Shown in pieces: positions 23,538-55,087 of a DNA stretch of 64,000 bases. The translations under genes and the position numbers were made by a program. The DNA lies in assembly GCA_047495785.1 (NCBI GenBank), contig JBLDXI010000021.1:124001-188000 (forward strand), read 5' to 3'. How positions within the stretch are numbered: position 1 is the stretch's first letter; the number at the start of each line of letters is the position of its first letter. Origin of the DNA: Lepidodermella squamata. Taxonomy: Eukaryota > Animalia > Gastrotricha. The notes beneath the pieces are model-generated. The model worked only from the letters and a program-made list of their open reading frames with translations, did no database searches and was not told the DNA's origin.

Positions 23538-26500
23538 ATGATCCTCATATCGCATAAATTTCTACCCGTTGCTGCGTTGTTATTAACGCTGCTGCAGTCA
23601 GCCTTCAGCCAACACAATTTTGATCTCTCTGGCTGTGGCTGGACTAAAGGATGCCAAGTGAACCCGCCCGATTGTTTGACGTCGGGATCACCTTGTTCGC
23701 AGGTCGTAACGTGGCAAACTTCGCCCGAAGACGCGACGAAAGTTCGGTATGAAATGTACGCAAATTATCAATACGATAACAATGGAACACCCGTTACACT
23801 CGGCTGGATTGGCGCTGCTCTATCGCCAAATCCAGCTTCAGTTATGGTAAAAAATTGAATTTTTAGAAAATTCCGGAAAATTAATAATATTTTCCTAGGA
23901 AGGATCTAGTGTTCTGCTATGTCGGCCAAACAAAGCTGTTTTGGCGAAAACTAGGAAATACGGAACCGACCCGTTACCTGACCAATTTGCGACGGCTGGA
24001 TTGTCGTCTTTGAAATACTCATCAACCAGCAATGGTTTTCAGTGTGTCGTAGACCGCTCGATAAAACCGATAAGTGGCCAAGATTCCCTGGCCCTCGATC
24101 AGCCGTGGGTTGTTGCATTCGCCTTTGGACCATACGACTCAACTAACGATAAAGTCAGCAAGCACGTTCGAGCTCGCCGGGCAGAACCGCAGCCTCAAAA
24201 GCTGACCGATTATCCGAAAAAGATCCCGTTCTCAGTGACTGGCTGCGGGTCAGATAAAGGATGCATCGTCAACCCGGCTGAGTGCTTGCAAACAACACCA
24301 GATGGATCTTCGTGCTGGCAAATCGTGACCTGGCAAACTTCACCTAGTGATTCTTCGAAAGTTCGATACGAGTTTTACACGGAAGGGAAATACAATAGCT
24401 CGGGTAATATGGTCGACGTTGGATGGATTGGCTCGGCTCTCTCTCCAAATCAACCATCTGTCATGGTAAAAAAGTTTATTATTATTTTTTTATAAATTTT
24501 TTTCCCAACATTTCCATGTTAATTATTTTTATCTAATTATTTTATTTATTTATTTAGCAAGATTCGAGTGTTTTGCTCTGCATGCGAACTGGAGTTGCTC
24601 TCGCTAAGACCCGAAAATACGGCACTGATCTTTTGCCGGGAGATTTCGCTAAAACCGGCTTGACTTTGATCGAATCAGCGACCATCAACGGCGACTTCAA
24701 ATGCATTGTCGATCGTAATGTTAAACCCGCGGCTGGTCAGGATTCGCTAGCCCTCGATAAACCGTGGGTCGTTGCGTTTGCAGTCGGTCCTTACGACAGC
24801 TCGACTAGCACTGTGAATAAGCACGTCAAAGCTAAACGTGCCGCGCCTGAGACCCAGACATTGACTGACTACCCGAAGAAAACCAGCGGTATTGACGTAT
24901 CGGGTTGCGGGTCGGCGAAAGGTTGCATCCTAAACCCGGCCGATTGCGCGACTACAACGCCTGATGGCTCGAGTTGTACGCAAATCGTGGCCTGGCAGAT
25001 CTCGCCGAGTGACAACACAAAAGTTCGCTTTGAAATGTACACCGAAGGCACTTGGAATGCGTCTGGCGTTATCACGGAGCTGGGATGGATCGGATTCGCG
25101 CTTTCGCCCGATAACACTTCAGTCATGGTAACGAAGAAATCGATTTTTTTAAAATAAATTCGATAAATTGATTTTAAATAAATTGACTAATGTTTTAAAT
25201 TTTTATTAAATTTTTAAAAATTAATTAAAAATTGGAAATGTCAGGTCAAGATTAAATACATTTATTTGTATCTCAGGTGAATTCGAATGCGATGATGTGC
25301 CGGCCGACTGGAGTTGCGCTCGGCAAAACTAGAAAATACGGCGTTGATCTTCTAGCCGGTAGCTTTGCAACCGCTGGCTTGGTCGCAATTGAAAATTCAA
25401 ACAAAAACGGAGCTTTCAAATGCGTGGTCGATCGAGCTATTGAGCCGCAAGCTGGTCAGGATTCGCTGCCGTTGAATAAGCCCTGGGTGGCAGCTTTCGC
25501 ATTTGGACCCTACAATTCGACTACTAACACATTCAACAAACACGTCCGAGCCCGTCGCGCTCAACCGGAGACTCAAACGGTGACCGACTACCCGAAATCG
25601 TCTACCAGCGCTCCTCAAACTACTCAAACAACCCCGTCGAATACTGATCGGCCGAATATCGATCTAACACAGTGCGGCACGAGCAAAGGGTGTTTGAAAA
25701 GCCCTAACGGCTGCACTACGACGAAGGATTGCGAGCAAATTATCACGTGGACAGTTCCAGCAGAGGATACCTCCGTTGTCAGATTCGAGTTGTCGTCACC
25801 GAAAAATGTCAGATCTGAAATTGGTTACATGGCTTTTGCCCTTGCGAAAGATACCGCGTTTATGGTAAAAGACCGTGATTTTTTTAAGGAGGAGTTGTTT
25901 ATTATTTTTTATTTTTAAAGAGCGATGCAAGTGTGATAGTTTGCGGTGTTCAATCAAACTCTGCGGCTATGAGGGCCTATCTATCTCACAATGCGAACGG
26001 GGAAAGCACGCCATTACCCGCTAACCTTCAAACCGGCATCAGCCTCGTTAAATCGCAAGTTACTGGCTCTTACGTGTATTGCACCGTCGACCGAAAAATC
26101 AAGCCGACAAAGGAGCAAGAGGGCAAAGTTTTGCCGCTTGACGGCTTGTGGTACCCAGCGTGGGCCGTTGGACCTAACGCAGCGTCTGGTGATTTGTCAT
26201 ACCACGTAGCTAAAACGCCGTTTTCAAGCAGAATCAACTGCACGGATGCTACGTCATCGGCGTCTTCGGACTCGTCTAAAGAACTGTTGTGGAAACTTCA
26301 CGCCCTTTTCATGATGATTGGCTGGATGATATGCGCTGCCTGTAGCATTTTAACGCCTCGCTACCTGAGAACACATTGGATCTCGACCAAAATATGTTCT
26401 GCTCAAATGTGGTTTGTAGTCCACAGAGCGCTGATGGTATGACAAAATTTCCCCGATTTTTTCAGCTAATTTATCTGAATTTTTTAGATTTCTGGCGTTG

Positions 26501-27277
26501 TTGCTGTCATCATTGGCCTAGTGTTGATTTTTGTCGCTAAAGACTTCAAATTTATTTCGGTAAAATTTCGAATATTTTTTATTCCGTCCCTGTAAATTTC
26601 GGTTTCAGATGGGTCCGTCTTATCCAGGGGCGCTGCACCCAGCTTTCGGCCTAGCTGCTAGTATCATTATGTTTATTAATGTTGGTTTATTAATTCTTGA
26701 AAATTTGAAAAAATAATTCATTTAAATTTTACTATTAGCCTATCGGTGCTATATTCCGACCACATCCTGGTACCAAAAACCGGTGGATTTTCAACTGGGT
26801 TCATGGCATGACAGGCGGCATCGGGTTCATTCTAGCGGCGTGCAACATAATTTTCGGAGCTATTTACGTCAAATCATCAGCTCTTTACCCGCTGATTGCC
26901 TGGGCAGCTGCTCATGTCGTAGTAGAAATTATCTATGTTCTCCTAATGGTGTCGGCTCGCAACAGACCGCGCACAAATACCGATATGCAGCTTCATTCGC
27001 CAGGTAAAAAAAACCGGTTTTTGAGAACAATATTCAAGTTTTTTCAATTTAAATAGGATCAAGCAGTGACCAGTCATCAGATGACCATGATGTAAATGGC
27101 AAGAATAAAGCGAAGACAACCGAGGTATAGTTTTAAATTTTGCTATTATTTTATTTTAAATTTTAAATTTTCCCTTTTATTTAGTACAAGGTATCGACAG
27201 CCGTGTTTTTCATCTATTTCCTTGTTACAATAGGCCTGACGATTGCCGCCACGGTTCTGCTGTTCGTCCAAAAATAA
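23538..27277 (+). CDS. FRRS1/SDR2-like ferric-chelate reductase: signal peptide + 4 DOMON domains + cytochrome b561
   Basis: Four repeats opening with CGxxKGC..P..C..C, then TW, VR(Y/F)E, a Met at an exon end and a late His. b561 domain has four His: KLHALFMMIGW, WFVVHRALM, ALHPAFG, FNWVHGMTG. Confidence 0.9.
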
Positions 27278-28249
27278 TAAATTCTCATCTATAATCATTC
27301 TTAACTTGATGTCTGCCTATATGCACCAGATATGAAGCGATGAACAATCCAGCTTTTATCCTTTATTTTTTGAGTCATTTAGTTTTCCAAAATGCCGTAT
27401 ATTCACCATGCTGATTTCGAAAGACTATGCCGTTTACAATCAAAAATGAAATATGAATTGAAATAAAGATGTTGCCAGAAATTGTTTTTTTTTAACATAT
27501 CGCGGAACGGTACAATTTTGACAAGAAAAAGGTACAACTTTGTAAAAAAAAATGCCAGAAAATCACTTCAGGTGAATTCTTAGCAAATTGTATCACCGCC
27601 TAGAGGGCGATTTTAGGGTTTTCGAGGATTCGATTCTAAAAATCAGCAGTCAATAATGGAACCGAATTCGGGAAAACAAAATCGATACCCTTATTCTACA
27701 GGAGCCAATGGATTTTTAGATATTTTTCCAAAACTTGAGGCAAAGGATTGTTTCAGAATTGAACGATGCGTCTTACCCAGAATTTTACACTGAATTTAAT
27801 GGCTATTTATTTAGAATTATATCGGTCAATTATGGCATCCTTAAAGCTCCGAAAAGAAGTTTTAGGGACATTAAAAATTCCAAAATTTCGTTCCGCTAAA
27901 GCAAATTAGGTTCCGCCCGCGATACATTTGGTTCTGGTAAAAGGAGGACCCTTTTCAAAATCGATGATACTTCAAACCACGTAAATGGAAACTTATCGGT
28001 GCGTGGCAAACGATTTTTGGTCAATTTGCGTACCATTTCAGCTTATCTCAATGGGTTAAATCTGATAAGGAAGCCAAAATAATTACTATTACGCTTATGG
28101 GCGGTATTCACCTACTTCACTGGTCTTGTGTGGATGCTAATCTTCAGCTTTAAATAAGTCAAAACCACTTGGTTCAAATTTTGCACCGAGCAAAGTCCAC
28201 TCTGTATAAATATTTTACTTCAAGTAATTTCGATAATTTTTCGATCCGG

Positions 28250-31200
28250 ATGCGAGAATTTTCACTTCTGCCAGTAATTCTGGCATGTTGCCAGCTCGTA
28301 TCTGGCCAAAGTGGCTTCGATTTGTCTACATGCGGAACTTCTAAGGGGTGCCTTCTGAACCCTATAGACTGCATGATTCGAACCCTAGATGGTTCTAGCT
28401 GCCGGCAAGTTGTCACCTGGCAACAATCCCCAGCTGGTGCAGATAAGGTCCGATTTGAAATGTTCAGCAATATCGTTTGGTTCGGAGCAAATGGAAACCT
28501 CGACATTTTTTGGATCGGATTTGCCTTATCTGACAACCCTAATTCCGTTATGGTAATCCTTTATTAGCTGCGTTTTCCTTATTTTTCGGTTATTTTTCTC
28601 AGATAAATTCCAGTGGCCTATTTTGCATGAAAGATGTTGACACCGGGGTACTTTCAGCGAAACTAGGCAAAATAGCTTCGCGGCCTAAGAAAAACGTAAC
28701 TTTACTCGAGGGTGAGTTAGCAACAGAAGGCTTGACGTCAATATCCACTGAATCATTGAGCTACGGTTTCAAATGCGTGGTTGATCGAGCTGTTAAGCCC
28801 AGTCCAGCTCAAAACGGCTTATCCTACCCTCTAGACGAGCCATGGACGCTAGCCTTCGCTGCCGGTCCTATCTCGACATACTCCAAGGCAATGCAGCAAC
28901 ACTTTTTCCGGCGTAAACTAGACGCGGGCCTTGTGACATTGACCGAAAAAGGCGACTACGCCAAATCAGCTGTACCCTATGTACCTGGCCAAATCGATTT
29001 GAGTGGCTGCGGTAAATCGAAGGGGTGTATTAGGAACCCTCCGGATTGCAGCCCGTCGGATAAATGTACCCAGGTTATCACGTGGGAACCAACGCCGATA
29101 ACTAGCAATCTACGCCCGAGTGAGATTCGGTTTGAAATGATGACATCAACTACCCAGTTTTACGAACCATCGAACCCGACTAATGCCGTCTCGAAATCAT
29201 TGGAATTTATCGCGCTTGGTCTGGCTAAGGCGCCTGGAAGTTATATGTTAGACGCCAGTGTTATTGTCTGCGGTCTTAGCGATACAGCCCCCTCGCCAAG
29301 AGCTTATCTTTCCTACAACAGCCAGGGTTCGAGTAAATCACTAGCCGAAGATGAGTACAAAGACATTCTGAAACTTGTTAGGAGTGATGTTGTAGGCTCT
29401 AAACTGTTATGCATCGTCGATCGTTTGATTGATAATAAGACTGAAAGCGATGAAATTCGGCGAGATGCGACGAGCCCGATCTTCTCCCTCGACCAGCCGT
29501 TGTACCAGGCTTGGGCAGCGGGGCCTAATGAGAACGGTTTCGCGTCATACCACGACAGGTCTGTCCAACCCTTCGCGACCCCAGTCACCCTGACCGATCC
29601 AATCGGGGGCATTCCTACAACCCCGAAACCAAGTGATAAGCTGGATTTGTCGCAATGCGATCAAGCTAAGGGATGTCTTCGCTATCCTGATAGCTGCCAG
29701 TCAGCTGCTGATTGCCAGCAAGTCGTAACTTGGCGGCAGTCTCCTTCAGATCAAGATGCAGTTCGATTCGAAATGATGACCTCTGCCACTTACGTTTCCG
29801 GCAGCTCTGTCAAACCATTAGAATACGTTGCGTTTGGTCTGTCCCGCACCAATCAATTTATGATAGCGGCCAGTGTGATGGTTTGTGGTCTTAACGAGGC
29901 TGGAACTAGTCTAACCACCTACTTTTCATTCAATTCTGACTACAGCAGCACGCCGCTACCTAAAGATCAAAATCAAGTAGGGCTTACTTTGATCGAGAGT
30001 GAATTGAACGGCGGGTCTTTGCTGTGCGTTGTCGATAGAAAAATCCAGTCATCGAACGTTGAAGTATTCCCTCTTGATGAATTATTGACCCCTGCAATTG
30101 CTGTTGGTTCGAACAAGAACGGCTACCTGTCCTATCACGATAGAAAGAATAGTTTCCAAACTAAAATAAACTGCAGCGAACCCTTCTCAGGCGAGATAAA
30201 GCCGGCTACTACAACGCAACCTACCTCAACTTCATTCCCTAACATCGATTTAACGAAATGCGGTAGGGAGAAGGGATGCCTTAAAAACCCAGAGGATTGT
30301 ACTGATAGCAAAACCTGTAAACAAATGATAACTTGGACAATTTCACCCGATGATTCATCATCGGTTCGTTTCGAAATTTCAACACCTAGACGTTACGCTT
30401 CGGACAACAACATCGAATATGTCGCGCTTGCTTTGGCCGAAGGGAGGAACACTTTTATGACTAACGCGAGTGTCTTGGTTTGCGGATTGAGTCCTGGCGG
30501 TAGTTCACTTAGGGCCTATTTGTCTCATAATGAGAAAACAACTAGCACGCCCCTTCCTACCGCGATTTACCAGACTGGAGTGACCATGATTAGGGCAGAC
30601 GTTACGAGTTCCTATATTCTATGTGTCATCGATCGCAAGATTCGCTCGACAACCCCTGGTCATGCTGGTAAAGTTTTCCCGTTAGATGAACTTTGGTACC
30701 CAGCCTGGGCTGTTGGTTCAAACAACGCGAATGGTTACCTGACATATCACTCTTCAAAACAGCCGTATAATTCGCCGATAAATTGTACGGATGTCACATC
30801 AACGGCTGCTCCATCTTCAGATAAGGCCCTGATGCAGAAACTTCATGGCGTTTTTATGATGCTGGGTTGGATGGTTTGCGTATCGTGCAGCATCTTAACG
30901 CCGCGGTACTTGCGCCAACATTGGAATTCGAAAATCATCTGCGGGGTCGAACTTTGGTTTGCGGTTCATCGAGCGCTAATGGTATTCCTTTAAATCTTTC
31001 TTAAAAAAAAATCCCAAAAATTTATAATTCGCTTAGATTGGAGGGATCGTTCTCGTTATAGTCGGATTCGCTCTCATTTTGGCCGTAAACGACTACGTCA
31101 TAATCGGGGTATGTTTATAGGCTTTGTGGATTGGCTTCAATTAAATTCGAATTTTCAGATTGGTTCCGTTTATCCTGATGCTTTACATCCAATTTTCGGT

Positions 31201-31826
31201 CTGGCATCAATTGTTATCCTATTCCTAAATGTAAGAGATTTTGTAATGAAGGAAATTTCTTAATTTTTCCAATTTTTTCCAGCCCATCGGAGCCGTTTTC
31301 CGTTGTAACCCGGGCGATAAGTACCGTTGGCTATTTAATTGGGGCCACGGAATGCTTGGTGGTATCGGTTTCATCCTCGCTGCTCTCAATATGATATTCG
31401 GAGGCATAATTCTTGAACGAGCCGGATCTCAAGCGGTGTACCCGATCATTGCCTGGGCTGGAATTCACATTGTGGTAGAAATTATCTACGTCATTCTTGC
31501 TTTTTGCTGCCGTAATAAGAAGCCGAGCGTACAGGAAGATATTCAAATGAGATCGTCGCAAGGTATGAAATACAAAATTTGACCTAATTATTTTAATAAT
31601 TATTATTTATTCTCAAGGCTCCTTGCCGGAAAATTTCTATTACACACCTGAAGCACCGCCTGTTTCGAAAAATGTGATTTTTCTGATTTAATATTTTTTG
31701 TTTGTCAATTGAATGGCTCTTTTGCATATACAGATGATTGCATCCACGGCTGTTTTCATCATTTATTTCATGACCAGCGTGGCCCTGGCAACCGCCGCCT
31801 CACTCTTGCTGTTTGCTGAAATTTGA
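28250..31826 (+). CDS. FRRS1/SDR2-like ferric-chelate reductase: signal peptide + 4 DOMON domains + cytochrome b561
   Basis: MREFSLLPVILACCQLVSG signal. Repeats CGTSKGC, CGKSKGC, CDQAKGC, CGREKGC. b561 His motifs KLHGVFM, FAVHRALM, ALHPIFG, FNWGHGMLG. Confidence 0.9.
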
Positions 31827-32589: not shown

Positions 32590-35053
32590 ATGGTTAGGAT
32601 CGTTTTCACTGCCCTGACAGTAGCTATTTCCTTCAGCTGCTGTTTTGGCTTTGATTTACTATCAATTAACACCGACGAATGCCACTCGTCAAAAGGCTGC
32701 CTCGTTCAACCTGATGGCTGCTTGGAGACTAAAACTTGCAATCTCATCTTCTCATGGACTAAATCGCCAGAAAATGACTCGTACATCCGATTCGAAATGT
32801 CCGCCCATTCGAAATTTCCAACAGCCGGAGGAAATCGGAAGCCAGTTCGCTATGTCGCCTTTGGACTTGGCGTTGACGGAAAGCACTTCATGGTATATTA
32901 CCCATTTTTTTAATTTTTTGAAATTTTTTGAAATTTTTTAGAGCAATTCAAGCGTGACGGTCTGTTCGTTCGACCTGAATAACCCTGAACCGAAAGCGTT
33001 TTTACTCCATCTCCCCGATCAAAGCAAGACATCAGAAGGCGTTAAGTTAATCAAAGGGGTCAATAAGGACAATCACATGCATTGCGTCATCGATCGCCTC
33101 ATCGAGTCATCGAATCCAACCAAATTTTTCCCTCTTGACGCCAATTGGTACCCGGCCTGGGCCGTTGGTGACCACATCGAGGGTGAAATGAAGTATCACG
33201 GCGAGACAAAGTACGGTTTCCGGGCTGCGGTAAATTTCAGCGACTATTCAAGCGGAAAGCAGTTGAAGGTATTCAACTCTGGCATCAGTTTGCCGCATGT
33301 GAAAGATGGGGCTAAAATCAATTTCGATGGCTGCCTTAATAAAAATCGATGCATTCGCCACCCGGAGGATTGCACGTCGACCGATGATTGCGAACAAGCG
33401 ATTTTGTGGTCTGTATCACCCGATGATTCTAAATCGATTCGCTTCGAATTTTATTCGGCCCGATCTCACAAGTCTAAACATCATGAAGGCGATCAAGTGG
33501 AATATTTAGCTCTCGGCCTTTCTGGCGATAAACATTTCATGGTATGAAAATTTCTAAAATTATCGAATCGATATCATGCTATTTTTCTATAGACGAATGC
33601 CAGTGTTTTGGTCTGTGGCCTGGCTAAGAATGGGACTTCCGCCGATGTTTACTTCAGCCATAACGAGCACAAATATAGCCAGCCTTTGTCTGAAAATTTG
33701 CGAAAAGTCGGATTGAAATTGATCCGGAGTGAAGTTAATTCCGACTCTTTTCATTGCGTTGTCGATCGGAAAATTACGCCAACTGATGATCAAGCTGGGC
33801 TGGTTTTCCCGTTCGATCAAACTTGGCATCCAGCTTACGCTTTTGGTCCGAATGACGGCGACGGTAACTAAATCAAATTTTCAAGAAACGTGTTTGATAT
33901 AATTTCAAAAATATATAGGGCTTTTAACACGTCACTACCGAGCTCATGGCTTCAAACATTGCGACATCGATTTTACAGCTGATGAAGCTCCTTATTGCGG
34001 CAAGAAGACACTTTTTCAGAAACACGTCGCATGGAAACTTCACGGTAAAAATTTCGGCATCCTAATGAATATAAACTGATCATTTGAAATTTTTCAGGAA
34101 TTTTTATGATGATCGGCTGGCTGGTTTGCATTGCCTGTGCTCTATTTACCCCGAGGTACCACCGCAATCACTGGTCCAAAACGGTTTTCGGCGTCGAGCT
34201 GTGGTTTTTGGTTCATCGCGCATTGATGGTTGGTTCATGAAATGTCTAAGCCCGCGGATATTTATATTTTCAAACCTCTAGATCATCGGTATCCTGTTCA
34301 TTATCGCCGGGTTTTTGTTCATTTTAGCCGCTAACGATTTCCTAATTGTCACGGTGAGTTTTCGCGAATTTTCAGGATTTTATTTAATATTATTTTTAAT
34401 TTTAGCCTAGTGGCAAGTTTCCCGAGGTTATTCACCCTTATTTGGGCCTGGTTGCTTTGTCGTTGCTTTTCGCCAATGTAAGTTTTATATTAATTTCAGC
34501 CGAAATTCAAGATTTATCGTGACTTTTTCAGCCGATTGTTGCTGTGTTCAGATGTAGTCCCGGGCATAGGTACCGAGCGATTTTCACTCGAATTCACGGC
34601 CTCATCGGCGGCAGCGCGTTTTCTCTCGGCGCCGTGACTCTGGCTATCGGGGCTTTTATGGTTCAGTCACTTGCCTTCTACCCCGTTGTTGCCTGTCTAG
34701 TGCTTTACTTTGTCGTCGAACTCGCGTTTTACATGAAAATAATCAAGGGCCAAAATTCGGCTCCAAAACCACCGGCTACAATGTACGGCACTACCGAAGA
34801 GCCGCTACCGGCTGAGGTCAGCAGGTCATCTACAATCGAACACGGCAGCAGTTTCAGCTCAACAGCTTCAGTCCTTAGCAACCGAACTCAATCATCTGCA
34901 ATCGTCGATCAATCATCGGTAAAATTTTCGATAAACAATTATCGCAAATTTATCGATTTTTTCCAGGTCAAAATGGCAAGCGGTCTTTTCGTATTTTACG
35001 TTGTCTGCTCATCTCTGTTGGTCGCTATCGCATCAATTTTGTTATTCGCGTGA
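32590..35053 (+). CDS. FRRS1/SDR2-like ferric-chelate reductase: signal peptide + 2 DOMON domains + cytochrome b561
   Basis: Repeats CHSSKGC and CLNKNRC. b561 His motifs WKLHGIFM, FLVHRALM, VIHPYLG, FTRIHGLIG. Confidence 0.88.
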
Positions 35054-35148: not shown

Positions 35149-38100
35149 TTATTCAGATGAGATTTTACGAGATGTTGAGATAATTTTTGTAGACATCAAA
35201 AATGGGTCATTATAAGCAATCGTTCTGGCTATCATCAACGCATCTACAGCTTTTCCACTCGTCAGAGCCACCAGAATTTTGTCGAAATTTTCACGTAAAA
35301 CTAGGTCTAAACGAGACAGATTTTTCAGCCCACGCGGGTAGGAATAAATCGAGGCAAGTAGTTCTAACGCATCGGCTTCACTCAGGCTTTTCAAATCGCC
35401 GGCAGAGCGGAAAATGTTGAAACGCGGCGATTCGTCATGTTCGCTCGGAATTTTCGCCATTTGCGCAAATTTATCCGCCGTCATTTTGCGAATACTCCGC
35501 AGAACTGGTACTAACATTTCGTCGAATTGCGGCCGGCGGGTCGGTTGCGGCGGCGAATAACGCCTCCGTCGACGCGAACTACTCGCAATTTCGTCCAAAT
35601 TTGAGTTGGCGATGTAGTCCGCCGCATCGATTAAACTATTCGCAAATATATTTCCGGGTGAATTTTGGCTCGATTTTTCTGAATTTCGATTCGAATTTAC
35701 GCATTTTTTCAGTAATATACTAACAAAATCTGTCAATCCATTTGAAGGATGGGCGATGCAATAGGCACCAATTGCGAGTTTCATCGACAGATCCATCGAG
35801 TCGAAAACTGCGGGTAATTGCTCGAAAAAAGCTAATTGACTCCTTTCAAGGTAAATTTGCCCTTGACCTCCAACTGATTGACAACCGCAAGGCATTGACT
35901 GAAATTGAGTTGAAGCTTCAAAGTACAAACGGCACCGGTTGTAGGTCAATTCAAGGCATTGGTACCACTCGACGACATCCTCCGCCAACATTTCCCCGAT
36001 TTTTGAGATCAGGCCGTGATTCATGTCCGAGTTTATAATTAAGGTGGCATAAATCGCTCGCCCCAACAAATTCGGCTCAACATTCGAAAAAGAGGCCGCT
36101 CGGAGGCAATTCAGCAAAATTAGCACATTTTCGTTAGAATCAGATACACCCCTCGAAATTTCTAGCATTATTTCAATAATTGTCGACGAGCAAATTAATC
36201 GGACTGTCAATAAATGGCTTGAAGCCGGGTGGCAAGATAGGATGAGTAGTAGAAAAACCGGCAGTAAATTATCGTTCGCTAAACCAGTCAGGCTTAACGA
36301 ATCCAGAATCCAATCAATCGGCGAAGATGGTTGAAAATTCGACCCGGTCACGTCGTGGTAGTGTTTAGTCAACGTGTTGCCCAGGGCGTTGTAACTCGCG
36401 ACTAGGTCTCGCAGTTCAATCGGCACGGAATCGACGGAACTCAGGCCAATTGATGAGAAGGTCGATGATAAATTCGAGCCGGCTAATTCGGGTGATTTCA
36501 GGCCGATGAATAGGAGATTGACGGCGAAATGCAACGCCAGGTGGATGTCGACGGTTCGAGCCGAGGATGAGTTGACCAGGCGGGCTGTTATGCGTTCGAA
36601 CGAGGCCAGCGCGACTGATAGGTAGATGTGGGAGACGCTTTGCGGCGGCAGGATTTTGCTGATTCGCATGTACCACAGGCTCATGTTGAGAGCCCAGGCG
36701 ACCAAGGCGGCTGGAGGACCATTGTCACTGCCTAAAATAATGATAAGAGACGTAATTTTAGCGATTTTAACAGAAAAATAGTAGAATTATATTTTTCAGT
36801 TTTATAGGCTCTTTTGTACAATGCTTTCCATTCAGGGCTTCAAATCGGACTTTTCCGAGATCGGACTGACTTTTACGCAGCTACGTAGCCTGCTTTCACC
36901 TTGAAAGGAGGCATTGCAGCGGCTTGAAAAGCGGTTTCATCAAAATGAAGTATCTTTGAAGTAAATTCAACGAAATAAGGCCCCATCTAAATTTTGCCAA
37001 CACTGTCAACTTTTCTTTGCATATTGACTCATCATAGCGACCCCGATTGCTCAGTCACGGGAGGACCCGAAAATTCACCCAGCGAAAACTTCGACATCCG
37101 TGCCCCGCGTCAACGTTAATGCTCAACGTTTTCATCTATTTCCCAATAGGACACCGACCCAGTTTTCGGGCCCATTGGTTTACGAGCTGAATCATCGTTC
37201 ACGGTAGTGCCAGTCGACGACATTCTCGTACCTCAACTAACATGGAACTTCATTTCACCAACTGATTTAGCGGCGATTCAGCTGAACGAAACTAGACGCT
37301 TCACCGACCCGTTAGGTTTCGTCAGCCAGGAAGAAACCCCAGCGCCTGTCACGCATACAAAAAGCGGCATTGTATGTACTTTTATTACTCCTGATTTGTT
37401 CAATTTTCAGTTTTTCAGAATCGTCCGCTGACAAAAATGGACTTCACTCTAAAGCTATCGCCTCTGGTCAGCGTAAAAATGTGTGTATGGGAAGACCAAA
37501 TTCCCGCCCTCAAACACGCGACCAAACCGAAAATCGTGGCCTTCAAACACGCGACAATTCAGCGCTCGGAAAGTTTCGGTCTTCAGGTCTCCTGCTAGTC
37601 AACCCTGACATAGAAGAAGCCTTAGTGCTGGTACCAATGCGAAAATAACATTTTCACAGTGCATCGTTACTACTCATTTTTCATCATATTATCATTTCAT
37701 TAAACCAGTTATCACATCCAATTAATCATGCTGAGGTCAAGTCATTTCTACGTAATTTGACAGATGTCAATGATCAACTTCTGGATTATTGGCCTTTCAT
37801 TGAGATCGTACATAACGAAAATTCTTGGAACGAGAAAGATCAATGCTACATGGAGAGCTACATTACAATTTGTTTCCGCTATGGGCCGAGCGTTGAGCAT
37901 TTTCGTCAAATGAACGGTGTCCTACAATGGGACGAGTGGCACTGGTCAAACATTCAAATCATACCAACACCAGGTTTCCCTCCCAAGACGATGAAAATCT
38001 TGGAGAACATCTTGTAAGATAAATTCTCAGCTTCAAAAAGGCGAAATTCCTTGGATAACTCTCAAATAGGCGCAGTTCGCAAATGAGTCCAACAAAATTC

Positions 38101-41631: not shown

Positions 41632-44245
41632 TCAGCCTCGACCAACTGGTCGAGTCTTAGCTCGATTGATTAGCAACCATAAAATTCCCCATCCAGCCAT
41701 GAAAACAACGATTGTGTAGCCGAAGAGATAGAAAAGTTCGTCCCAAATCGACGTTAGCGGCACTTCGTACTCTTTCAAAACGTCGTAACCAGTTCGAAAT
41801 TTCTGGCAGAGCGGATGCAGCTCCCATGAACACGGTATAGCCGGGTCGCCTTAAAAACATAATATTGTCAAGAATAATCGGCAAATTTTCAGGACTTTCA
41901 TACCTCTGTAAGCGATTTTCAGTAAGGCCCAAAATGAAGCGTAGCCAAAAACAAGGAAATGAATCCAGCTTAAAACAACAGTAACAAGGCCGAAGGCAAT
42001 CGAATAGCCGCCCAGGACCCAAGTCAGCATGATGATTGCAAAAGGTAGGTACATCGCACTACGTTCATCAGCCAAGATTCCTGAAACGATATCGTAAAAA
42101 AAGTTTAGGGTAGATTTGGGATTCCAGCACCAAATCTAGCCAAAATATGGGTTTCGAGTTCGTTGAAAGTCGCAAAAATCGAAAAGAAAATCCGAAAAAT
42201 TAAGTGCTAGAACCTCAAGTTTTAGGGTCCGAAACCCCAATTAAATTACCAACCTAAAATGAAGCCAAAACCTTGCGAAAGAACGGTAACTAAAGCCACC
42301 ACAGCGATCTGTAGAGTCAAGCCCTCGGCAGCTGGAGGTAATTGATGCGTCAAAAACCAAGTTCCAACAGGTAAAATCCAGCTGATGAACAGTTGAAACG
42401 GCACATCGGCCAAACTTTTCGCCCAGTAGAATGCAGTTAAATGGTACCAGGAATTGATATTCTCGCGAAGGATAACGCCGAAATGCGACGGCCCACTCAT
42501 GATTGCCGTGATTACAGGCGGGCAAATCGACATCATGTTAACGAAATTAACAAAAGCTGTATTCGTGTACACCTTAGTCGCATCTTGGCCACAGCCTTGA
42601 AAGGCGACACCCAATAACACCGTGCAGAAAATTGCAGCTATAACTCGTCCGAGGAAAGAAGCCTGTAAAATCAATGTTTTAAATTTAGAAAAATCATAAC
42701 TTGAATCCGAATTTCAAATTTACCACATCGCGCAAGTAAACAATGAAACTTCGTTTCAGTAAAACAAAAAATTGGACCATCGGCTTAGCGCGAGAACTGC
42801 ACAATCGAACGAGCTGAAACGAGGAAGGCATGTGATTGATAATCGAAAATTTTAAGCTAGGTTAGTTGCGGTACCAGTAAGCCTATTGGTCAATTAGTAT
42901 AGCTCAAGCTCGTTAGTAGGCATTTCTAAAAACCGTTTGATCGTCGTGCATGATCAGCTCCTGCCAAATCAAAATGTATTTTTCATCTGAGAAAATCCAA
43001 GAAATTTACCGCCCGTTTAGACGGTGGAGGTTCGGGTTTCTCGCGCAGATCTGACATTGATTGCGATGGAATTATTGCTACGACAGCATTACTCTGTTCT
43101 CCCTTCTTTCGATAGGTGACTCTTCTAGTAGGTTTTGCTGAAGGTCTGGTGTCCCCTTTGCCAAGAGGTCCAGTTCGTCGGATATCCGGCGGAAGAGTCT
43201 TACCAGCTTCAACCAAGCGCTGCACAAATTCTGGTTAAAGATTTACAAGACGGCTGAAGTTAGCATTACCTCTATGTTGTCTTCCTCAAAAACGAAGTCA
43301 GCAGGGTTGTCAGTAGCCGGACAATTAGGTAAGCGACAAATTTGCATGTATTCCACCAAATATTCAGCTGGAAATAGGAATGCAATGAATTGACTCTGTC
43401 ACTAGAAAACAAACTAACCTGGGCCTTGGTATGCGCAACGGCCCCCTTTAGCCAAAAGCATAAGCGTGTCAAACATGTGAAATATTTTCGAGTTGGGTTG
43501 ATGAATCTTCAATTTTAACGAAATAATAATGTTGAATTGATCAGCCAAATTTTCAATCAATTTACCGTGCAAATGACATTACACCCTGACATAGCGATAT
43601 TTTTCAGCAGCTCAATGAGACGGTAACTCGAAACACTGTCAAGTCCAGTAGTAGGCTCGTCAAGGAATAGTACTGGCGGAAAGTTTATCAGCTCGACCGC
43701 TACAGATACACGCTTTCGCTGACCGCCAGATAATCGTCCGATTCTCCGGTCGGCAACTTCATTTAAACTCAAACGATTCAACAATAATTTAGTCATTCGC
43801 TCTCGCTCTTTAGCCGAGTTAACATTTGGAGGTAACTTCATCCAAGCGGCATAGTTCAGCGATTCCCTTACAGTCAGTTGTGGGAAAAGGAAGTCATCCT
43901 GCAGAATGTAGTTAGCTATCACTGACATTATTTTTGAGCAATGAGACAACGGGTGTTCACGACCGTTTATAACGACTGTTCCCGTGGCTCCAGTTTGGAA
44001 TCCAGCTAGCGCATTCAGAAGACTTGACTTTCCGGCACCGGAGGGGCCCATCTAAACATACAGCGCTATGTAAACAGTACTTTACTATTACAAGAGACCA
44101 TTACAATGCAATTCAATAGACCGTGGCTGAAAACACCGTTCACTCCATCCAGCAAGGTTTTTTGAACGTTTTTGGACACGTTCACTTGGTAGCGCACGTT
44201 GTGGAAAGCTAAATCTGCAGCATATGGCCGATGAGTGAGGTCCAT
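41632..44245 (-). CDS. ABCG half-transporter (white/ABCG1/4-like), multi-exon
   Basis: Walker A GPSGAGKS, YILQDD, signature LSGGQRKRVSVAVEL, Walker B LFLDEPTTGLDS, RENINSWYHLTAFYWAKSLADVPF. Spliced last exon PC...LCQKF...WLLINRAKTRPVGRG*. Start inferred as MDLTHRPY. Confidence 0.92.
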
Positions 44246-44351
44246 CCTTATATTCTATTAATCTCCTACAAATGTCAAAAATAAAGAATAAGTGAAAAAC
44301 TGACATAGTAAATTAAAACAAAGACTGAGCTGAAGACGTCTAGAAGTCAAC

Positions 44352-45325
44352 TTAGACTTGATTGAGGTTAGCCAAAGGAACAAAAGCAACACCGTTGAAG
44401 ATTGTCATCGTTGGAGGAAGCACATACGTATGGTGATGTTCGTAGCCGTAAGTCGCCAGAAATAAGATAATGAAAAAGCTCATGGCCCATTCTGAAATTG
44501 CACTGATCAAATGATAGCTCCAGCCCTGAAAGATATCGTAAAACAGATATTCCATGAAAAGAAACTATCAGATTACTGCATCCTGAGGACGCCATTTCCT
44601 CTTATCGATACCATCGAAGCATGAAAATGAAAGAAAAGCGAAGATTTGCGCTGAAAATAAAGTTCGATCGTCACCTAACGATTGAAAAAGTAACAACATA
44701 CTTAGCATGAATGCCACCAAAAATAAAGCTGCGAGTATGCTGCGAATATATGCAATTGGCTTTAAAACGCATTGAGGAGCAGTGGCGAAGGAGATGACGC
44801 TTTCGAACACCATGTAAAGGCCGGCTGAGAAAAATGCAATGAAAGCCCCGATCATGTGAACCACAAGAACCGATGTTTCCTGGAAGTTTGCCACGATAGA
44901 CACGCCGAAAGCAGCCATCAACCCAAAGACGAGGGCAACAGAATTAAGGCATTTTACTCGAGGAGGGTTGAGCAGTTTCAGATATTGTTGCACTTGCAGG
45001 TAACGCAAATATACGATTAATCCAACTGTCCGAGGTTAACACAGAATAAAAGTAAAAGGAACCAAAGCGAACAAGTCATACATAAAGCTGACGTCATATT
45101 AAGCATTTGAGAAAACACGCAGCTCTCGGGTACCGTCGTACCAGTATCACTGATGTACGGGAAATCTGCTGTAGCATGACCCAACAATACTGCGATGATG
45201 TATCTGCAAGAGTCCAATGAAATGCTAAATGCACGCCTATTAGCTGCCACATAAATGGCTCACGCTGTTATCATCGTCATCGGAAAAAATATCAGCAAAG
45301 CCACTAAAACATTTTGCAACCGCAT
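44352..45325 (-). CDS. DRAM/TMEM150 (Frag1/DRAM/Sfk1 family) membrane protein
   Basis: YIIAVLLGH...FPYISDTGTTVPESCVFSQMLN, GVSIVANFQET...VHMIGA, GWSYHLISAISEW. A possible upstream exon ending at a donor near 45877 would be in frame. Confidence 0.9.
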
Positions 45326-45349
45326 TCTCGTGTCTTGGAGGCTAAAAAA

Positions 45350-47629: not shown

Positions 47630-50600
47630 ATGGCGGTGACAAAGCAGGCATTCACCGGCTTGCTACTTTTAGCATTAATATCTATTACCCTGGCTGATGC
47701 AGATGGGCCAAACATCGATTTGACGAAATGTGATGTCAGCAAGGGGTGCTTACGAAACCCACCTAACTGCAGCCCAGCATCCGCCTGCTCTCAAATCATA
47801 ACATGGACTGTGAGTCCGGATGATCCTGGATCTGTTCGATTTGAAATGGCTTCTGTGGTAAATTACACGGGCAAGGAGATACAATTTATTGCGTTTGGAT
47901 TAACCGTCAATGAGACCAGTATTATGGTGGGAGAATTGTGTTTTGTCTTAAGCTCAAGTTTTAACCTTGAATATTTTAGCTTAATACCAGCGTAATTGTT
48001 TGTGCTAACAATCAAACCGGCACTTCTTTGACCGCTTACTTGTCGCACAATGCCGACCACGTGAGCACTCCGCTGCCGGCGAAGGATTTCAAAACTGGCT
48101 TGAAAATGATATCAAGTGCCTATGACTCTGGCTACATCCAATGCGTGGTCGATAAGCAGATCTTACCGACTCAATCACAAATCGGTCTCATTTTCTCGCT
48201 TGAAGAATCTTACTATCCGGCTTTTGCTGCAGGGCCCACTGATGCTAATGGCATTTTACAAGGCCATTACGTCAAACATGTTTTGCCCGACACCATAACG
48301 GCAACAGATTTTACTCAACAGCTGTCAATAGATGTATCTCTTTGCGGCGTTTCCCGTTATTGCCTACGAAACCCACCAAACTGCCAATCTCTGGGAGATT
48401 GCGAACAGATCGTTTCGTGGCACCCTCTGCAAGCTGGTGACAAGGTTCGATTCGAACTTAGCACGAAACGTTCAAACGATTACGTCGCTTTTGGGCTCAC
48501 AGGCATTTCTGGAATAGATGGCTTTATGGTAAATTAAAAATACCTACTTGATCAAATTTTACTATTATTGTCTATAGAAAAATAACAGTGTACTTGCCTG
48601 CGCGATGAATCACACAACCGGACAAGTGATCGCATTCCAATCGCACAATCAGGTCAATGCTAATACTCACTTCGAGAACGTCATCACCGACAAGCCTTTG
48701 TTAGGAGTGACTACTCAATTGATCAGTGCAATCGATGATCGTATATTTTGCGTCCTGGATCAAAACGTTTTACCAGACCCAACTTTGAACGGAATTATCT
48801 TCCCTCTGGATCGACCTTGGTATCCAAGCTGGGCAAGTGGGCCGACTAAGAACGGTAACCCCTAAAAATGATAACGTACATTCATATGAACTATTAACGC
48901 TGTTGTAGGTTTTTTGAGTTTCCACGACGACTCAAAGCAGGGTTCGATTTCGGAAGTAATTTGCTCCGAACCTTTCACCCCCCTTCCTCCCTCCCCAATG
49001 CCGGACGTATCAACGTGCAACTCAATGAAAGGCTGTTTCCTGGTACCACCTGGCTGCACGAACGATTGTTCCCAAATCGTCACTTGGAGGGTTTCACCCG
49101 ATAACGCTGGTGATGTCCGCTTCGAAATGTATACAAGAACGGAAAAGGTCAAAAACAAAACTGTAGACTACGTAGCTTTTGGGTTGACTCACAATTCTAG
49201 CACTCCAATGGTTAGTTTGAAATGTCCATTTTCCTTTCCATAATTATCATATTCGGCCTTCATTTTTCAAGGTGGATACAAGTGTTTTAGTATGTGCTTT
49301 GAATCACTCTGATGGATCGGTTACTGCTTACCTTTCTCATAATGCTGATCACACGAGCACGATGTTACCAGGCAACGAAGCTCGCGAAGGATTGACGTTA
49401 CTGAAAACAACTCAAGGAAGCTTCTCCTTGTATTGCCTCATTGATCGATCAATCTTGCCTTCGCCAGAGCAGGCCAATCTCGCGTTCCCTCTGAACGAAC
49501 CTTGGCTTCCAATTATGGCCATTGGACCGACCAATGACTTGGGAGTTCTGCAGCACCACGTTGGTGTGCAAGAAATGGAAGATAAGGTCATTTTGACGAA
49601 TTATACAGTTGGCGTTGGCATTGATTTATCCGGCTGTAACGTCACACAAGGATGTGTTGTTACGCCATCTGATTGCCGCGAGTTGAAAGATTGCAAGCAA
49701 GTTGTTACGTGGCAAGCATCGGATGATGGCACCTATGTCAGGTTCCAACTCGCTGCTAAGAGGGCCAGTTTCGATTACATTGCATTCGGCCTGTCCGATG
49801 GGGATGACGAGGATGGAATTATGGGAAACTCGAGTGTTTTAGCCTGCGCTTTCAATCATACGACATCAATGCTCGAGGTTTTCAACTCACACAACCAAGT
49901 CAATCCAGCCACAAAACACTACGCCAACGTGATTACCAGCGATCCCCAACTTGGCCTGCGGGTTTTGTTGTTAACTGCCACAAATGACGACATCATTTGC
50001 GTGGTCGATCGAGCGGTTAAGCCAGATCCCTCACTTAACGGAATAATTTTCCCTCTTGATCAACCTTACTACCCAGTTTGGGCCTCAGGTCGCACTGAAA
50101 ATGGGGCACTCTATTATCACTTCGACGACAAGTATAAGCTGCTCAACAAAATTACGGTGACTGGACCTTATGGCCCGTTGTCGCCGTCAATAGATTTATC
50201 GACCTGCGGAGTGACCAAGGGCTGCGTAAGAATGCCGAGCAACTGCCAAAATACAGGAGATTGTACGCAAATTGTCACATGGCGTGTTTCGCCAAATGAT
50301 GCTAGCAAGATCAGGTTCGAAATGGCGACTGTTACGACAATAGCAAATAAAGACATCAACTGGGTTGGTTTCGGTTTATCAGTCGACGCAAAAAGCTTGA
50401 TGGTACCTCCTTAAGTTCGCCAACATCCATGTTTAATTAGTATTTTTCAGACAAACACCAGCGTTTTGGTTTGCGCTCAAAACAGTTCGGACCCTAGCCA
50501 GCTGTGGACCTACTTGACACATAACAAGAACTACACCAGCACGATTTTGCCAGGTCAACTTGCATTCGACGGCGTTGAGTTGATCGAATCACTCAATTCG

Positions 50601-53600
50601 CAATCTTACTTCCAATGTATCATTGATCGAGATATCGAACCGAATTTCGAGCAGTTCGGTTGGGACTTTTCTCTAGATTTGTAAGTTTCAAGTTAACAAT
50701 CTGTTCTGTAATGGATCCATTTTTATAGACCGTGGATTCCCGCGATTGCTGCTGGTCCCAATGACCCAAAAACTGGTCTATTAGCACCTCACTACGTGAA
50801 ACAGAAGTTCCCAGACTATGTCACGCTAACAGATTTTGCCAACAGCACAGTCATCGACATTTCCGGGTGTGGAACGACAAAGGGCTGTCTGTTAAATCCA
50901 CCGGGTTGCGCAAGCTTCGCAAATTGCACCCATATCGTTACGTGGTCGCTACTACAACCAGGCGACTTTGTTCGCTTCGAACTAGCGACACTTCGTGCTG
51001 ATTACGACTACATTGCTTTTGGCCTATCCGGCGGCTTCGCGGCAGGTGATATAATGGTACAGATAACCATAAGATTTTCAAGACAAATTTATTGAGATTG
51101 TTGTTGGATATTAGGGTAACTCCAGTGTGCTCGCATGCGCCTACAACGCAACAATGGCCCAAGTTGCTGTTTTCAATTCGCATAATATGCTCAACCAGAC
51201 TTCTGGACGTTACGTCAACGTACCAACATCTAACGAGCAGTTGGGCTTGAGACCAATCTTGACATCGGCAACTAATGACCATATCATCTGCGTCGTTGAC
51301 CGCGCTGTTAAGCCTGATGCTTCTTTGAACGGTATCATCTTCCCCCTTGACGAGCCTTGGTTCCCAGTTTGGGCCTCGGGACCTACGAAGAATGGTTACC
51401 TCACTTACCACGATGAGTCGAAAAAGAAGTACCCGTACAAGGTCGTTGTTGCTGGGCCTGGTTACGGGCCGGTTACGCCTGCTATCAGCGTTGAGGGCTG
51501 CGGCACTTCTAAAGGCTGCCTAACGCTTCCAGACGGATGCAAAACAGGCGATTGTACGCAAATAGTGACCTGGCGAGTTTCGCCCGATGACGCGTCTCTA
51601 GTTCAATTCGAAATGGCAACAACAACCACCAATGTTAGCGGAGTAATTCTGGACTACGTTGCATTCGGATTAACTGGAAATCCGCAGTCAATAATGGTAA
51701 GGCGTTTTCCTTGCTTAAATCTGTTCGGGTTTTGAATTTTTTCGTGCAGCTGAACACGAGCGTTCTAGTTTGTGCCTACAACGAAACAGATTCCAAAGTA
51801 ACAGCCTATCTTTCACACAACGCCAATCACACCAGCACAATTTTGCCGCGAGAAATATATCAACTCGGTGTTAATTTGGTCGAATCTTGGTACTACGGCC
51901 AATATTTCGTGCAATGTCAAATCGAAAAGACAATCTTACCGGCCTCACCTGCCCAGGTGGGTTTGGTTTTCCCGTTGGACTTACCCTGGTATCCGGCAAT
52001 GGTTGCTGGGCCGACTTCGAATGGTGTTCTCCAGCATCACAAAGTCGTGGATTTGCAGCAGTCGCCTGTTACCGTAACTTCATTCACGAATGGGTCAGAA
52101 ATCGATGTTTCACAATGTAACGTTACTCGCGGCTGTCTGCTCCAACCGCCTGGCTGCTCGACATTTGAAACATGCCAACAAGTCGTTAGCTGGTACCTGT
52201 TGCCTGGCGGGGACCACGTCCGATTTGAAATGTCAACAATTCGTAAGAACTTCGACTACATCGCTTTCGGCTTGACAAGTGGCGAAATCATGGCTAATGG
52301 ATCCGTGCTGGCCTGTGCGTTGAATGAAACTTCCGCTCGAGTCGAGGTCTTCAATTCGCATAACCACTGTAACGAGACGGCTCAACGATGCTACAGTGTC
52401 ATAACAGATGACCCGCAAGTCGGTTTGCGTCCGATTTTGACAACGGCAAATGACGACCACATTCTTTGCATTGTTGACCGAGCTGTTAAACCAGATCCGT
52501 CTTATGACGGAATAATTTTCCCTCTAGACGAAGCTTGGTACCCAGCTTGGGCGGCTGGGCCAACGGTTAATGGCCAGTTGTCGTACCACCATGATACAAA
52601 ACGGCTGTACGATACGGAAATAGTTGTCACTCAGAACATGTCTCCACCAGATCCTATCTCTCCAAGCACCACATCGGCTCCACCAGTTGGACCGGAGATC
52701 GATTTGACCTCCTGCAATGAGCAAAAGGGCTGTTTTAGGAATCCGCCTGACTGTTACCCGTCTTCGCTTTGCTCGCAAGTAGTCACTTGGACCGTGAGCC
52801 CGGACGATCCAGCTGCAGTTAGATTCGAAATGGCGACTCAACTAAACTACAACGGCAAGCAAGTTCAGTTTGTGGCTTTCGGTCTTACAACGGATCCAGC
52901 CGACATTATGGTAAAACATTTCATTGCATCCTTAAATGAATTTTCAAACTGAATTTTTATAGTTGAATTCGAGTATCTTGGTTTGTGCCGCCAATCAAAC
53001 TGGCTCAGTTGTCACTGCCTATTTGTCTCATAATGCTGATCATAAGAGCACCCCTCTGCCTACAACGGATTTCAAAGTCGGCGTAGAACTCGTCCGAGGG
53101 GAAATGGGCGCGACTTATATCCTTTGCGTTATCGACAAGAAAATCATGCCGTCCGCCCCTAGTCAAACTGGCCTGATTTTCCCGCTATACATGCCATTTT
53201 ACCCGGCATTTGCTGCCGGTCCAGCTGATGCGAATGGCATTCTTCAGGGTCATTACTTCAAGACGGTCTTGTCGACTCCTGTTACTCCGACTGATTTCAC
53301 GAATCAAACATCGATCGACATTTCGCTTTGCGGAATCACGCATGGCTGTTTGCTGAACCCGCCAGATTGCACGTCACTCGAGTCTTGCCAGCAAATGGTA
53401 ACTTGGCACGTTCTCCAATCTGGTAGCGTAGTTAGGTTCGAACTTTCTACAACGCGAACTCATGACTATATCGCTTTTGGACTCACTGCTTCCAATACCA
53501 AAGAAGGATTCATGGTAAATTTAATTACTTTAATTTTAGTTTATTTTGAAAGCAAGATTATGATTGAAATAGGGTAACAACAGTGTCCTGGCTTGCGCGA

Positions 53601-55087
53601 TGAATCATACCAGCGGGCAGTTGATTGCCTTTCATTCTCACAATCAGAAGGATTTGGCCGGCGGCTTTAAGAGTGTCATCACCCCGAACCCTATGATTGG
53701 AATAAATCCACAAAAAATTATCGCTGGAGACGATCGACTGATATGCGTGCTTGATCAAAACGTCACACCTGATCCGTCGTTGAGCGGAAAAATATTCCCA
53801 CTCAATGACCTGTGGTATCCAAGCTGGGCGAGTGGACCTACCGCAGATGGTGAGTATTTAGGTCATATTTCTGTTTCTGTAAAATTCTTAATATTTACCC
53901 TAGGTGAGCTGGATTATCACGACAAAGTTAAGATGGGCTATGACTTTAGGGTGGACTGTACGAAACCTTTCGCGCCCCCAGTGCCGATACCCAGTAATAA
54001 ACAGCTTATGAAAAAGCTACACGGTAAGTTGACCCTTTTGCTAAAAATTTGAATGTAATATTAACTTTCACAATTGTTCAGCCATCTTTATGATGTTTGG
54101 TTGGATGGTTTGCGTGGCCTGCAGTATTCTGACGCCACGATTCCTTCGCAAGCACTGGACCACGATGCGCTATCTCAATTTGCAACTTTGGTTCGTCGTT
54201 CACCGAACTTTGATGGTCAGTTAATTTTTCTTAAAAATTGCTTTCGATAATTAAATTTCTTTAAATTAGTTAATCGGAGTCCTTTTTGTGATCATCGGAT
54301 TTGTCCTGATTTTGTGGGTCAATGACTTCGAACTGCTGCAGGTTAGCAAATGACTTTAATCTCTATTTCAAGTTATTTTCAAATTGATTTTTCAAGATGC
54401 CGCCGTCTTACGATGGATCTTGGCTGCATCCTTACTTTGGTCTAGCCGCTGTCATCATCATTTTCATTAATGTATAGACCCTAGCTTTTGGTGTTCCTAG
54501 TATACTAATTATTCCTTCTCAGCCTATCATCGCAATGTTCCGGCCCAAACCAGACCACGAGCAGCGGCCTGTTTTCAATTGGATACACGGTCTTATAGGT
54601 GGCGCCGGCTTCATTTTGGCCATTGTCAATATTTTGATCGGCGGCTATATGTTCCAAGAAAACGGGTCGCCTGCGATTTACGCTATCTGGGCTTGGGTCG
54701 GTCTTCACGCTCTAGTCGAACTCATCTATCTAGTCCTATGGCGAATTCGTGCTCAACGTGAATCGGATGAAGCCAGGCCACTGATGCCAAACGCGGATAC
54801 GGCTAATATTGGTATACCTAATTCTATAAATGAGTAAGTATATTTTCAAATAACGTTATGCCTTAATAACAGCCAACTATAGCGGCAGTACGACGTTAGC
54901 TGCAATCGACGACGATTCTCCAACACCAATGGTATTACCAAATAAATTTTAGCAAATTGTTTATTAATTTTCTCAATTTATTTTTCAGCACAAATTTTCA
55001 TCCGGACTTTTTGTGTTCTACGCCGTCAGTTCTGTCATTTTGACATCGGTTGCGTCCGGACTGATTTTTCAAATGAAGTCCACTTAG
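47630..55087 (+). CDS. Giant FRRS1/SDR2-like protein: signal peptide + 10 DOMON domains + cytochrome b561 (roughly 2,100 aa, estimated)
   Basis: Ten CxxxxxC..P..C repeats near 47.71, 48.33, 49.00, 49.62, 50.19, 50.85, 51.48, 52.10, 52.70 and 53.31 kb, joined by short GT-AG introns. b561 motifs KKLH, FVVHRTLM, WLHPYFG, FNWIHGLIG. Ends FQMKST*. Confidence 0.88.

Follow-up and report, generated by a model that had tools for sequence, protein, structure and literature searches.

Four clustered genes of the gastrotrich Lepidodermella squamata encode cytochrome b561 proteins with two to ten outer DOMON repeats: a candidate relay of tethered haem domains

CYBDOM proteins combine a cytochrome b561 core with DOMON domains; their relatives include animal FRRS1/SDR2 as well as HYP1 and CRR, two ferric reductases of plants. 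Functions for these proteins are recent: HYP1 and CRR were described as plant ferric and cupric reductases in 2024, and ferric reductase activity has been shown in vitro for SDR2/CG8399. For Arabidopsis HYP1 and CRR, a path over three haems that leads from ascorbate to Fe(III) or Cu(II) in the apoplast has been modelled and currents have been recorded in oocytes (PMC10784544, PMC10784552). HYP1 in particular carries currents driven by ascorbate and acts as a reductase of ferric chelates (PMC10784544). Here, we describe four CYBDOM genes, named A to D, in a 64,000-nucleotide stretch of the gastrotrich Lepidodermella squamata (GenBank assembly GCA_047495785.1, contig JBLDXI010000021.1, positions 124,001 to 188,000 of the forward strand; hereafter the window). 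Their products carry 4, 4, 2 and 10 DOMON repeats, respectively.

The four proteins share several features with animal FRRS1/SDR2 (Drosophila CG8399), namely extracellular haem-type DOMONs with a Met/His pair and disulfides, four His in the b561 core, and a C-terminal transmembrane helix behind a cytosolic linker. Relatives were also retrieved by sequence at E values down to 1e-25, and the membership of A to D in the CYBDOM family is secure. However, canonical FRRS1/SDR2 consists of a Reeler domain, one DOMON and b561, whereas A to D have no Reeler and two to ten DOMONs. HYP1 and CRR resemble A to D in these features: a signal peptide, a DOMON with a haem pair (Met90/His174) and b561. They differ in carrying a single DOMON.

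Taken as a whole, the locus is best explained as four paralogous CYBDOM genes with 4, 4, 2 and 10 outer haem-type DOMONs and an ascorbate-fed b561, whose products would act as relays of tethered cytochromes. We give this reading a probability of roughly 0.6. The features on which it draws are as follows.

23538-27277, + strand: gene A, spliced model of 10 exons and 1039 residues, with a signal peptide, four DOMONs, a b561 core and a C-terminal transmembrane helix
23613-26256, + strand: DOMON array A1-A4 of gene A, from the repeat alignment
26296-26963, + strand: b561 core of gene A over four exons, with five transmembrane helices and His805/846/884/920 (E 3.9e-45 with a hidden Markov model, HMM, of Pfam-validated relatives)
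27185-27277, + strand: last exon of gene A, encoding an extra C-terminal transmembrane helix
28250-31826, + strand: gene B, spliced model of 7 exons and 1084 residues, with four DOMONs and a b561 core
28310-30801, + strand: DOMON repeats of gene B, of which B2-B4 are without introns
30841-31522, + strand: b561 core of gene B
31734-31826, + strand: last exon of gene B
32590-35053, + strand: gene C, spliced model of 9 exons and 682 residues, with two DOMONs and a b561 core
32659-33998, + strand: DOMON repeats of gene C
34038-34738, + strand: b561 core of gene C
34967-35053, + strand: last exon of gene C
47630-55087, + strand: gene D, 18 exons and 2177 residues after correction, with ten DOMONs, a b561 core and a C-terminal transmembrane helix
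47708-53977, + strand: DOMON array D1-D10 of gene D, arranged as five odd/even (A-type/B-type) pairs
54017-54741, + strand: b561 core of gene D, with His1935/1976/2015/2051 and introns confirmed by RNA-derived contigs
54812-54872, + strand: gene D intron as really spliced in RNA-derived contigs, replacing a predicted intron at 54834-54882
54989-55087, + strand: last exon of gene D, encoding an extra C-terminal transmembrane helix, with the joint 54931/54989 present in an RNA-derived contig

Gene models were obtained by chaining open frames via scored donor/acceptor pairs, with the small 3' exons set by eye. All four coding sequences lie on the plus strand, contain no internal stops and are divided by short, AT-rich GT-AG introns of 48-149 nucleotides, mostly in phase 0. 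Genes A, B and C are adjacent, and the gap of ~12.5 kb between C and D is filled by minus-strand genes. An earlier sequence-only reading of the window had proposed four genes here with 4, 4, 2 and 10 repeats. The spliced models reproduce its outer coordinates exactly, and its repeat numbers were recovered by a regular expression and by MAFFT alignment.

Two public sequence runs cover the stretch: X1 (labelled 'RNA?'), which has spliced contigs, and X2 (DNA), which is colinear with the genome. Between 49200 and 55100 in gene D, GT..AG joints are found in X1 contigs at 12 of the 13 predicted introns, while X2 contigs have no splice joints. A loose contig end at 49271 agrees with the intron that precedes these joints. 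The penultimate intron of the first model (54834-54882) was overruled by the RNA-derived joints; its shift to 54812-54872 changes a small number of residues in the cytosolic tail, taking the protein from 2181 to 2177 residues. Gene D is transcribed and spliced as modelled over this interval, last exon included. Separately, X1 and X2 differ from the window at ~145 reported positions between 49200 and 55100, including some single-base insertions or deletions within introns. Each of the two runs departs from the window at many single bases; their sources are other strains or haplotypes, either of this species or of one very close to it.

The 20 DOMON repeats are 183-216 residues long and share a mean pairwise identity of 36% (range 24-64%). 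In all-against-all BLASTP searches each repeat matches the other 19, with a weakest E value of 1e-9. Supporting this assignment, the Pfam DOMON model (PF03351) recognises intron-free exons of B and D with E values of 2.6e-21, 1.5e-15 and 2.5e-07, and a six-frame HMM scan of the window found no DOMON pieces outside genes A to D. Twelve alignment columns do not vary among the 20 repeats; they hold six Cys and a single Pro, Trp, Leu, Met, Gly and His. The Met/His pair that the sequence-only reading had noticed in every repeat corresponds to two fully invariant columns, with Met preceding His by 86-102 residues. This spacing is 84 in HYP1 (PMC10784544), 93 in CG8399 (PMC10691727) and 98 in cellobiose dehydrogenase (CDH). 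In 13 of the repeats the Met is followed, two residues on, by the start of an N-glycosylation sequon (M-x-N-x-S/T).

In all four proteins the first DOMON begins at residue 21-27, immediately behind a hydrophobic signal sequence, which leaves no space for a Reeler domain. No Reeler (PF02014, the strict-sense criterion for FRRS1/SDR2) is present in A to D, in agreement with the signal peptide-(DOMON)n-b561 layout first proposed.

The fold was approached with an AlphaFold2 model of B3-B4, based on an alignment of 118 tandem pairs, which has a mean predicted local distance difference test score (pLDDT) of 90.3 and a predicted template modelling score (pTM) of 0.63. Both repeats match the DBH DOMON and haem-b cytochrome domains with Z scores of 10.7-12.3, and the next matches are antibody Fabs at no more than 5.8. 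The top match is the human DBH DOMON (4ZEL, Z 12.3). The cytochrome b matches, with Z scores of 10.7-11.6 over 152-160 aligned residues, are pyranose dehydrogenase (6JT6) and CDH (1D7B, 1D7C, 1PL3, 4QI3, 4QI6 and 4QI7). These solved structures were reached by fold alone, as a profile of five intact repeats had no sequence match among PDB chains up to an E value of 1.

Judged by alignment ranges, Met65 and His163 of CDH lie within ~8 residues of the corresponding Met and His in B4, and the spacing between the ligands is 97 residues versus 98 in CDH. The ligand columns also coincide with M279/H373 of the Bactrocera orthologue of CG8399. This orthologue was used as a bridge, as Drosophila CG8399 was sought among the matches by the published positions of its haem ligands, Met286/His379, and not found (M286/H379; PMC10691727). 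One b-haem per DOMON repeat is likely, because a cytochrome-type fold is predicted and the ligand pair is kept at all positions of the arrays across phyla. The resemblance to the cytochrome domains of CDH and pyranose dehydrogenase extends to the fold and the Met/His haem b spacing. Nevertheless, those enzymes are fungal, secreted flavocytochromes with 10-15% identity to the repeats, a single cytochrome domain, and flavin or PQQ (pyrroloquinoline quinone) as the electron source in place of b561.

Each of the four proteins continues past its last DOMON with five hydrophobic helices; a hydrophilic linker then leads to helix six, for which the last exon codes. An HMM of the b561 domains of Pfam-validated relatives matches A to D over its full length (E 1e-39 to 4e-47). 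Four His are found in all four cores, in the motifs KLH, VHR, (L/I)HP and xHG on helices 1-4. They align with those of relatives whose b561 passes the Pfam threshold, which bears out the earlier claim of four His per b561 domain. The extra C-terminal transmembrane helix, a criterion for FRRS1/SDR2, is present in A to D, in the relatives P0005, P0006 and P0014, and in an oyster (Ostrea) FRRS1, P0007; it is a family trait and not a novelty of this locus.

An exhaustive HMMER protein search returned 505 relatives with E values no higher than 1e-3. The best of them shows 41% overall identity, and a 215-residue fragment is 56% identical; a word-index protein search with the 793-residue exon of B gave no match. 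DOMON copies were counted in the best 150 of the 505 relatives with an HMM of the 20 repeats. One copy was found in 75 relatives, two in 44, three in 15, four in 9, five in about 5, six in about 4, seven in 2 and eight in 1; these counts include 14 cluster duplicates, which were removed in the approximate figures. Relatives with long arrays include the following.

Hypsibius exemplaris OWA54550: tardigrade, seven DOMONs, named 'putative ferric-chelate reductase 1'
Solemya velum KAL5022071: bivalve, seven DOMONs
Amphiura filiformis XP_072017628: brittle star, six DOMONs
Mesorhabditis spiculigera: five DOMONs
Caenorhabditis remanei E3NIU3: four DOMONs
Allacma fusca: four DOMONs
Chamberlinius hualienensis: four DOMONs
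Artemia franciscana: four DOMONs
Lymnaea stagnalis: Reeler and four DOMONs

Pfam confirms six to seven DOMONs together with b561 in several relatives. A Reeler is present in single-DOMON relatives and also in Lymnaea and Ostrea. The ten copies of gene D exceed the maximum of eight among the best 150 relatives and put it at the extreme of a known family, in which b561 proteins with four to eight DOMONs are common in public invertebrate proteomes. The sequence-only reading had named, as a result that would count against it, that such architectures might already be widely described. This is true of the proteomes, whereas no study of these proteins was found: the searched literature on CYBDOM proteins and electron conduits does not treat long DOMON arrays and discusses at most two DOMONs per protein. 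In insects, even two are rare (19 of 888 CYBDOM matches; PMC10691727). As annotation alone, the locus is an ordinary result that adds further members to a known family.

Two of the relatives deserve separate mention. The protein with eight DOMONs and b561 (P0005, 1804 residues) is encoded by a single intron-free open reading frame of 5.4 kb (L001:7635-13049) on a 33.6-kb metagenome scaffold, ERZ23486790. As the other gene calls on this scaffold are short and have no Pfam matches, a micro-eukaryote or small animal that has not been sampled is its probable source. In Amphiura filiformis, the isoforms XP_072017628 (P0006, 1459 residues) and XP_072017631 (P0154, 1264 residues) have six and five DOMONs and differ by 195 residues, equal to one repeat. 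Chain length in this species may be tuned by alternative splicing.

Invertebrate poly-DOMON b561 proteins have both their architecture and the Met, His and Cys columns in common with A to D. Among 271 full-length repeats of the relatives, the Met is kept in 98.5%, the His in 93% and the Cys columns in 92-99%. Repeats of other phyla are 22-32% identical to those of A to D and show no one-to-one positional correspondence with them, so the arrays have probably expanded independently. Together, the locus and the survey show that invertebrates commonly have long DOMON arrays in which each repeat keeps the full ligand pair, and that copy number reaches ten in gene D.

Within the window, the arrays grew through internal duplication. 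In gene D the repeats alternate between two types, with 43-63% identity among odd-numbered repeats, 46-60% among even-numbered ones and 31-40% between the two; the closest are D1 with D9 (63%) and D2 with D10 (60%). A1-A3 are 56-64% identical to one another and, judged by their sequences, represent a recent triplication, and B1 is 42-45% identical to them. A phase-0 intron follows immediately after the codon of the putative ligand Met in 15 of the 20 repeats, for example at 47924-47990 and 50400-50465. An exon thus starts halfway through one repeat and stops halfway through its neighbour, so that gaining or losing it is neutral to the reading frame.

The repeats are joined in two ways. Tight junctions have gaps of 0-2 residues at A1-A2-A3 and of 1-2 residues within each gene D pair, and every remaining junction is a Pro/Thr-rich linker of 8-19 residues; such linkers are present in every gene. 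For instance, the Thr/Pro linker before A4 is 18 residues long, and those between the gene D pairs are Pro-rich and 8-17 residues long. In the B3-B4 model, the 13-residue Thr/Pro linker has a pLDDT below 50, and the same disorder is probable for the linkers that follow A3, B1, B2 and C1 and each even-numbered repeat of gene D. A tight pair modelled in a homologue (P0015:207-580) has a pLDDT of 95.6, a pTM of 0.85 and no disordered segment. Set against the pTM of 0.63 for the linker-joined B3-B4, this means that two repeats probably form a rigid unit where their junction is tight, but not where a linker connects them.

The proposed relay would begin in the cytosol, where, by analogy with HYP1, CRR and SDR2/CG8399, ascorbate would reduce the inner b561 haem and the electron would cross to the outer one. 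From there it could pass to the haem of the membrane-proximal DOMON, as modelled for HYP1 with an Fe-Fe distance of ~21 Å (PMC10784544), and on to the distal DOMON haems, which would reduce Fe(III), Cu(II) or a different acceptor outside the cell. Where repeats are tightly joined, as in A1-A2-A3 and in every odd-even pair of gene D, they would behave as fixed units. The Pro/Thr-rich linkers would be crossed by collisions of mobile domains, for which the mobile haem domain of CDH, carried on a flexible linker, is a precedent. Copy number would then set both the reach of the chain and its electron capacity. As rigid pairs are mixed with disordered hinges, such a tethered relay is favoured over a single rigid wire. 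This raises the question of whether all haems are loaded and redox-connected and, if so, whether through fixed contacts or tethered collisions. Four paralogues with two, four, four and ten repeats in one genome offer a natural length series for addressing it.

Several points weigh against the tethered relay. Read support is confined to positions 49200-55100 of gene D, and genes A to C and the first 1.6 kb of D are models only. On a single exon piece, the Pfam b561 model (PF03188) scores 17.5 bits, below its cut-off of 23 bits. The ligand assignment comes from alignment ranges and not from residue-level superposition, and agrees with equivalence to the CDH ligands without proving it. The homologue with the modelled rigid pair is only ~25-31% identical to the repeats of the window. 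Finally, by our own geometric estimate, a straight chain could place neighbouring haems ~35-45 Å apart, too far for useful tunnelling. This roughly domain-length spacing follows from CYBDOM models, which place the DOMON haem at the membrane-facing end, and on the same estimate it speaks against simple tunnelling, except where pairs adopt a face-to-face packing.

Another reading connects only the membrane-proximal DOMON to b561 and assigns the distal repeats to haem capture or storage, to redox buffering, or to a role as spacer above the cuticle or glycocalyx. It is unlikely, though it keeps some force. The proximal repeats A4, B4 and C2 form a similarity group of their own (40-55% identity), which suggests a special role beside b561, and both the flexible linkers and the 38 N-glycosylation sequons in the gene D ectodomain would suit it. 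However, the proximal repeat of gene D, D10, is an ordinary even-type repeat, and the ligand pair and disulfide pattern are alike at all positions, also in the relatives, which fits one cofactor chemistry throughout. In addition, Pfam scans of the open reading frames show no evident haem-transport partner in the window.

A more ambitious form of the relay is doubtful. It holds that the ten-DOMON protein and its four- to eight-DOMON relatives constitute a eukaryotic long-range extracellular relay, in which rigid two-haem pairs separated by Pro-rich hinges would carry ascorbate electrons over tens of nanometres, for example through cuticle or glycocalyx, to mineral or chelated metals. If true, this would be an animal counterpart of the bacterial multihaem conduits, independently evolved. 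The likeness to the bacterial conduits MtrC and OmcS is limited to this proposed role of bringing electrons to distant acceptors via many haems. No CxxCH c-type haem motif is present in the four proteins. Their haem b would be non-covalent, one per beta-sandwich of ~190 residues, and the fold is unrelated, with MtrC only a weak Foldseek match to the B3-B4 model (probability 0.33).

Quite unlikely, too, is a rigid wire of up to ten DOMON and two b561 haems with edge-to-edge distances below ~14 Å, which would extend tens of nanometres from the cell as in bacterial multihaem cytochromes. The invariance of Met and His in the distal repeats as well, the tight junctions of A1-A3 and the gene D pairs (with a pTM of 0.85 in the tight homologue pair), and the regular five-fold pair structure of gene D, which suggests a defined assembly, all speak for a wire. 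Nevertheless, the disordered B3-B4 linker and the low pTM of that pair do not fit it, and Pro/Thr-rich linkers break up the array of every gene. Haem density differs as well, since the arrays would hold one haem per ~190 residues and MtrC-type conduits hold about one per 65-75 residues.

It is very improbable that gene D is an artefact in which at least two genes, or alternative transcripts, have been merged. The gene is not covered end to end by any one contig, contig evidence begins at 49200, and the Amphiura isoforms show that related proteins can differ by one repeat length. On the other hand, all junctions from 49211 to 54988 are spliced in frame in RNA-derived contigs. Between D1 and b561 there is no internal signal peptide, transmembrane helix or stop, and there are relatives with seven to eight repeats, one of which is encoded by a single frame free of introns. 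The least probable reading of all, that the repeats are cofactor-less or sugar-binding DOMONs of the DBH or bacterial type, serving adhesion or matrix binding with b561 acting alone, draws on the haem-free human DBH DOMON as single best structural match, but haem-b cytochrome domains are tied with it in Z score, and the Met/His pair, invariant in A to D, is not conserved in DBH or sugar-binding DOMONs (PMC10691727).

Other genes surround the four CYBDOM genes. The minus-strand genes between C and D include a half transporter of the ABCG type and a member of the Frag1/DRAM/Sfk1 family, neither of them obviously connected in function with the cytochromes. Right downstream of gene C lies an uninterrupted reading frame without a Pfam family. 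Upstream of gene A, open reading frame pieces match SLC13 Na+/sulfate-carboxylate symporters and look like two to three tandem paralogues.

42246-45008, - strand: half transporter of the ABCG type (ABC2_membrane at 42246-42674, ABC_tran at 43557-44051) together with the Frag1/DRAM/Sfk1 family protein (44568-45008)
35149-36705, - strand: uninterrupted open reading frame of 518 amino acids
8791-20596, - strand: SLC13 symporter pieces (PF00939, PF03600)
3753-4616, + strand: exon for the transmembrane region of a Cys-loop neurotransmitter-gated ion channel (PF02932, E 1e-13)

The SLC13 gene is 54-59% identical to environmental contigs, and its best named animal relatives reach ~32%.

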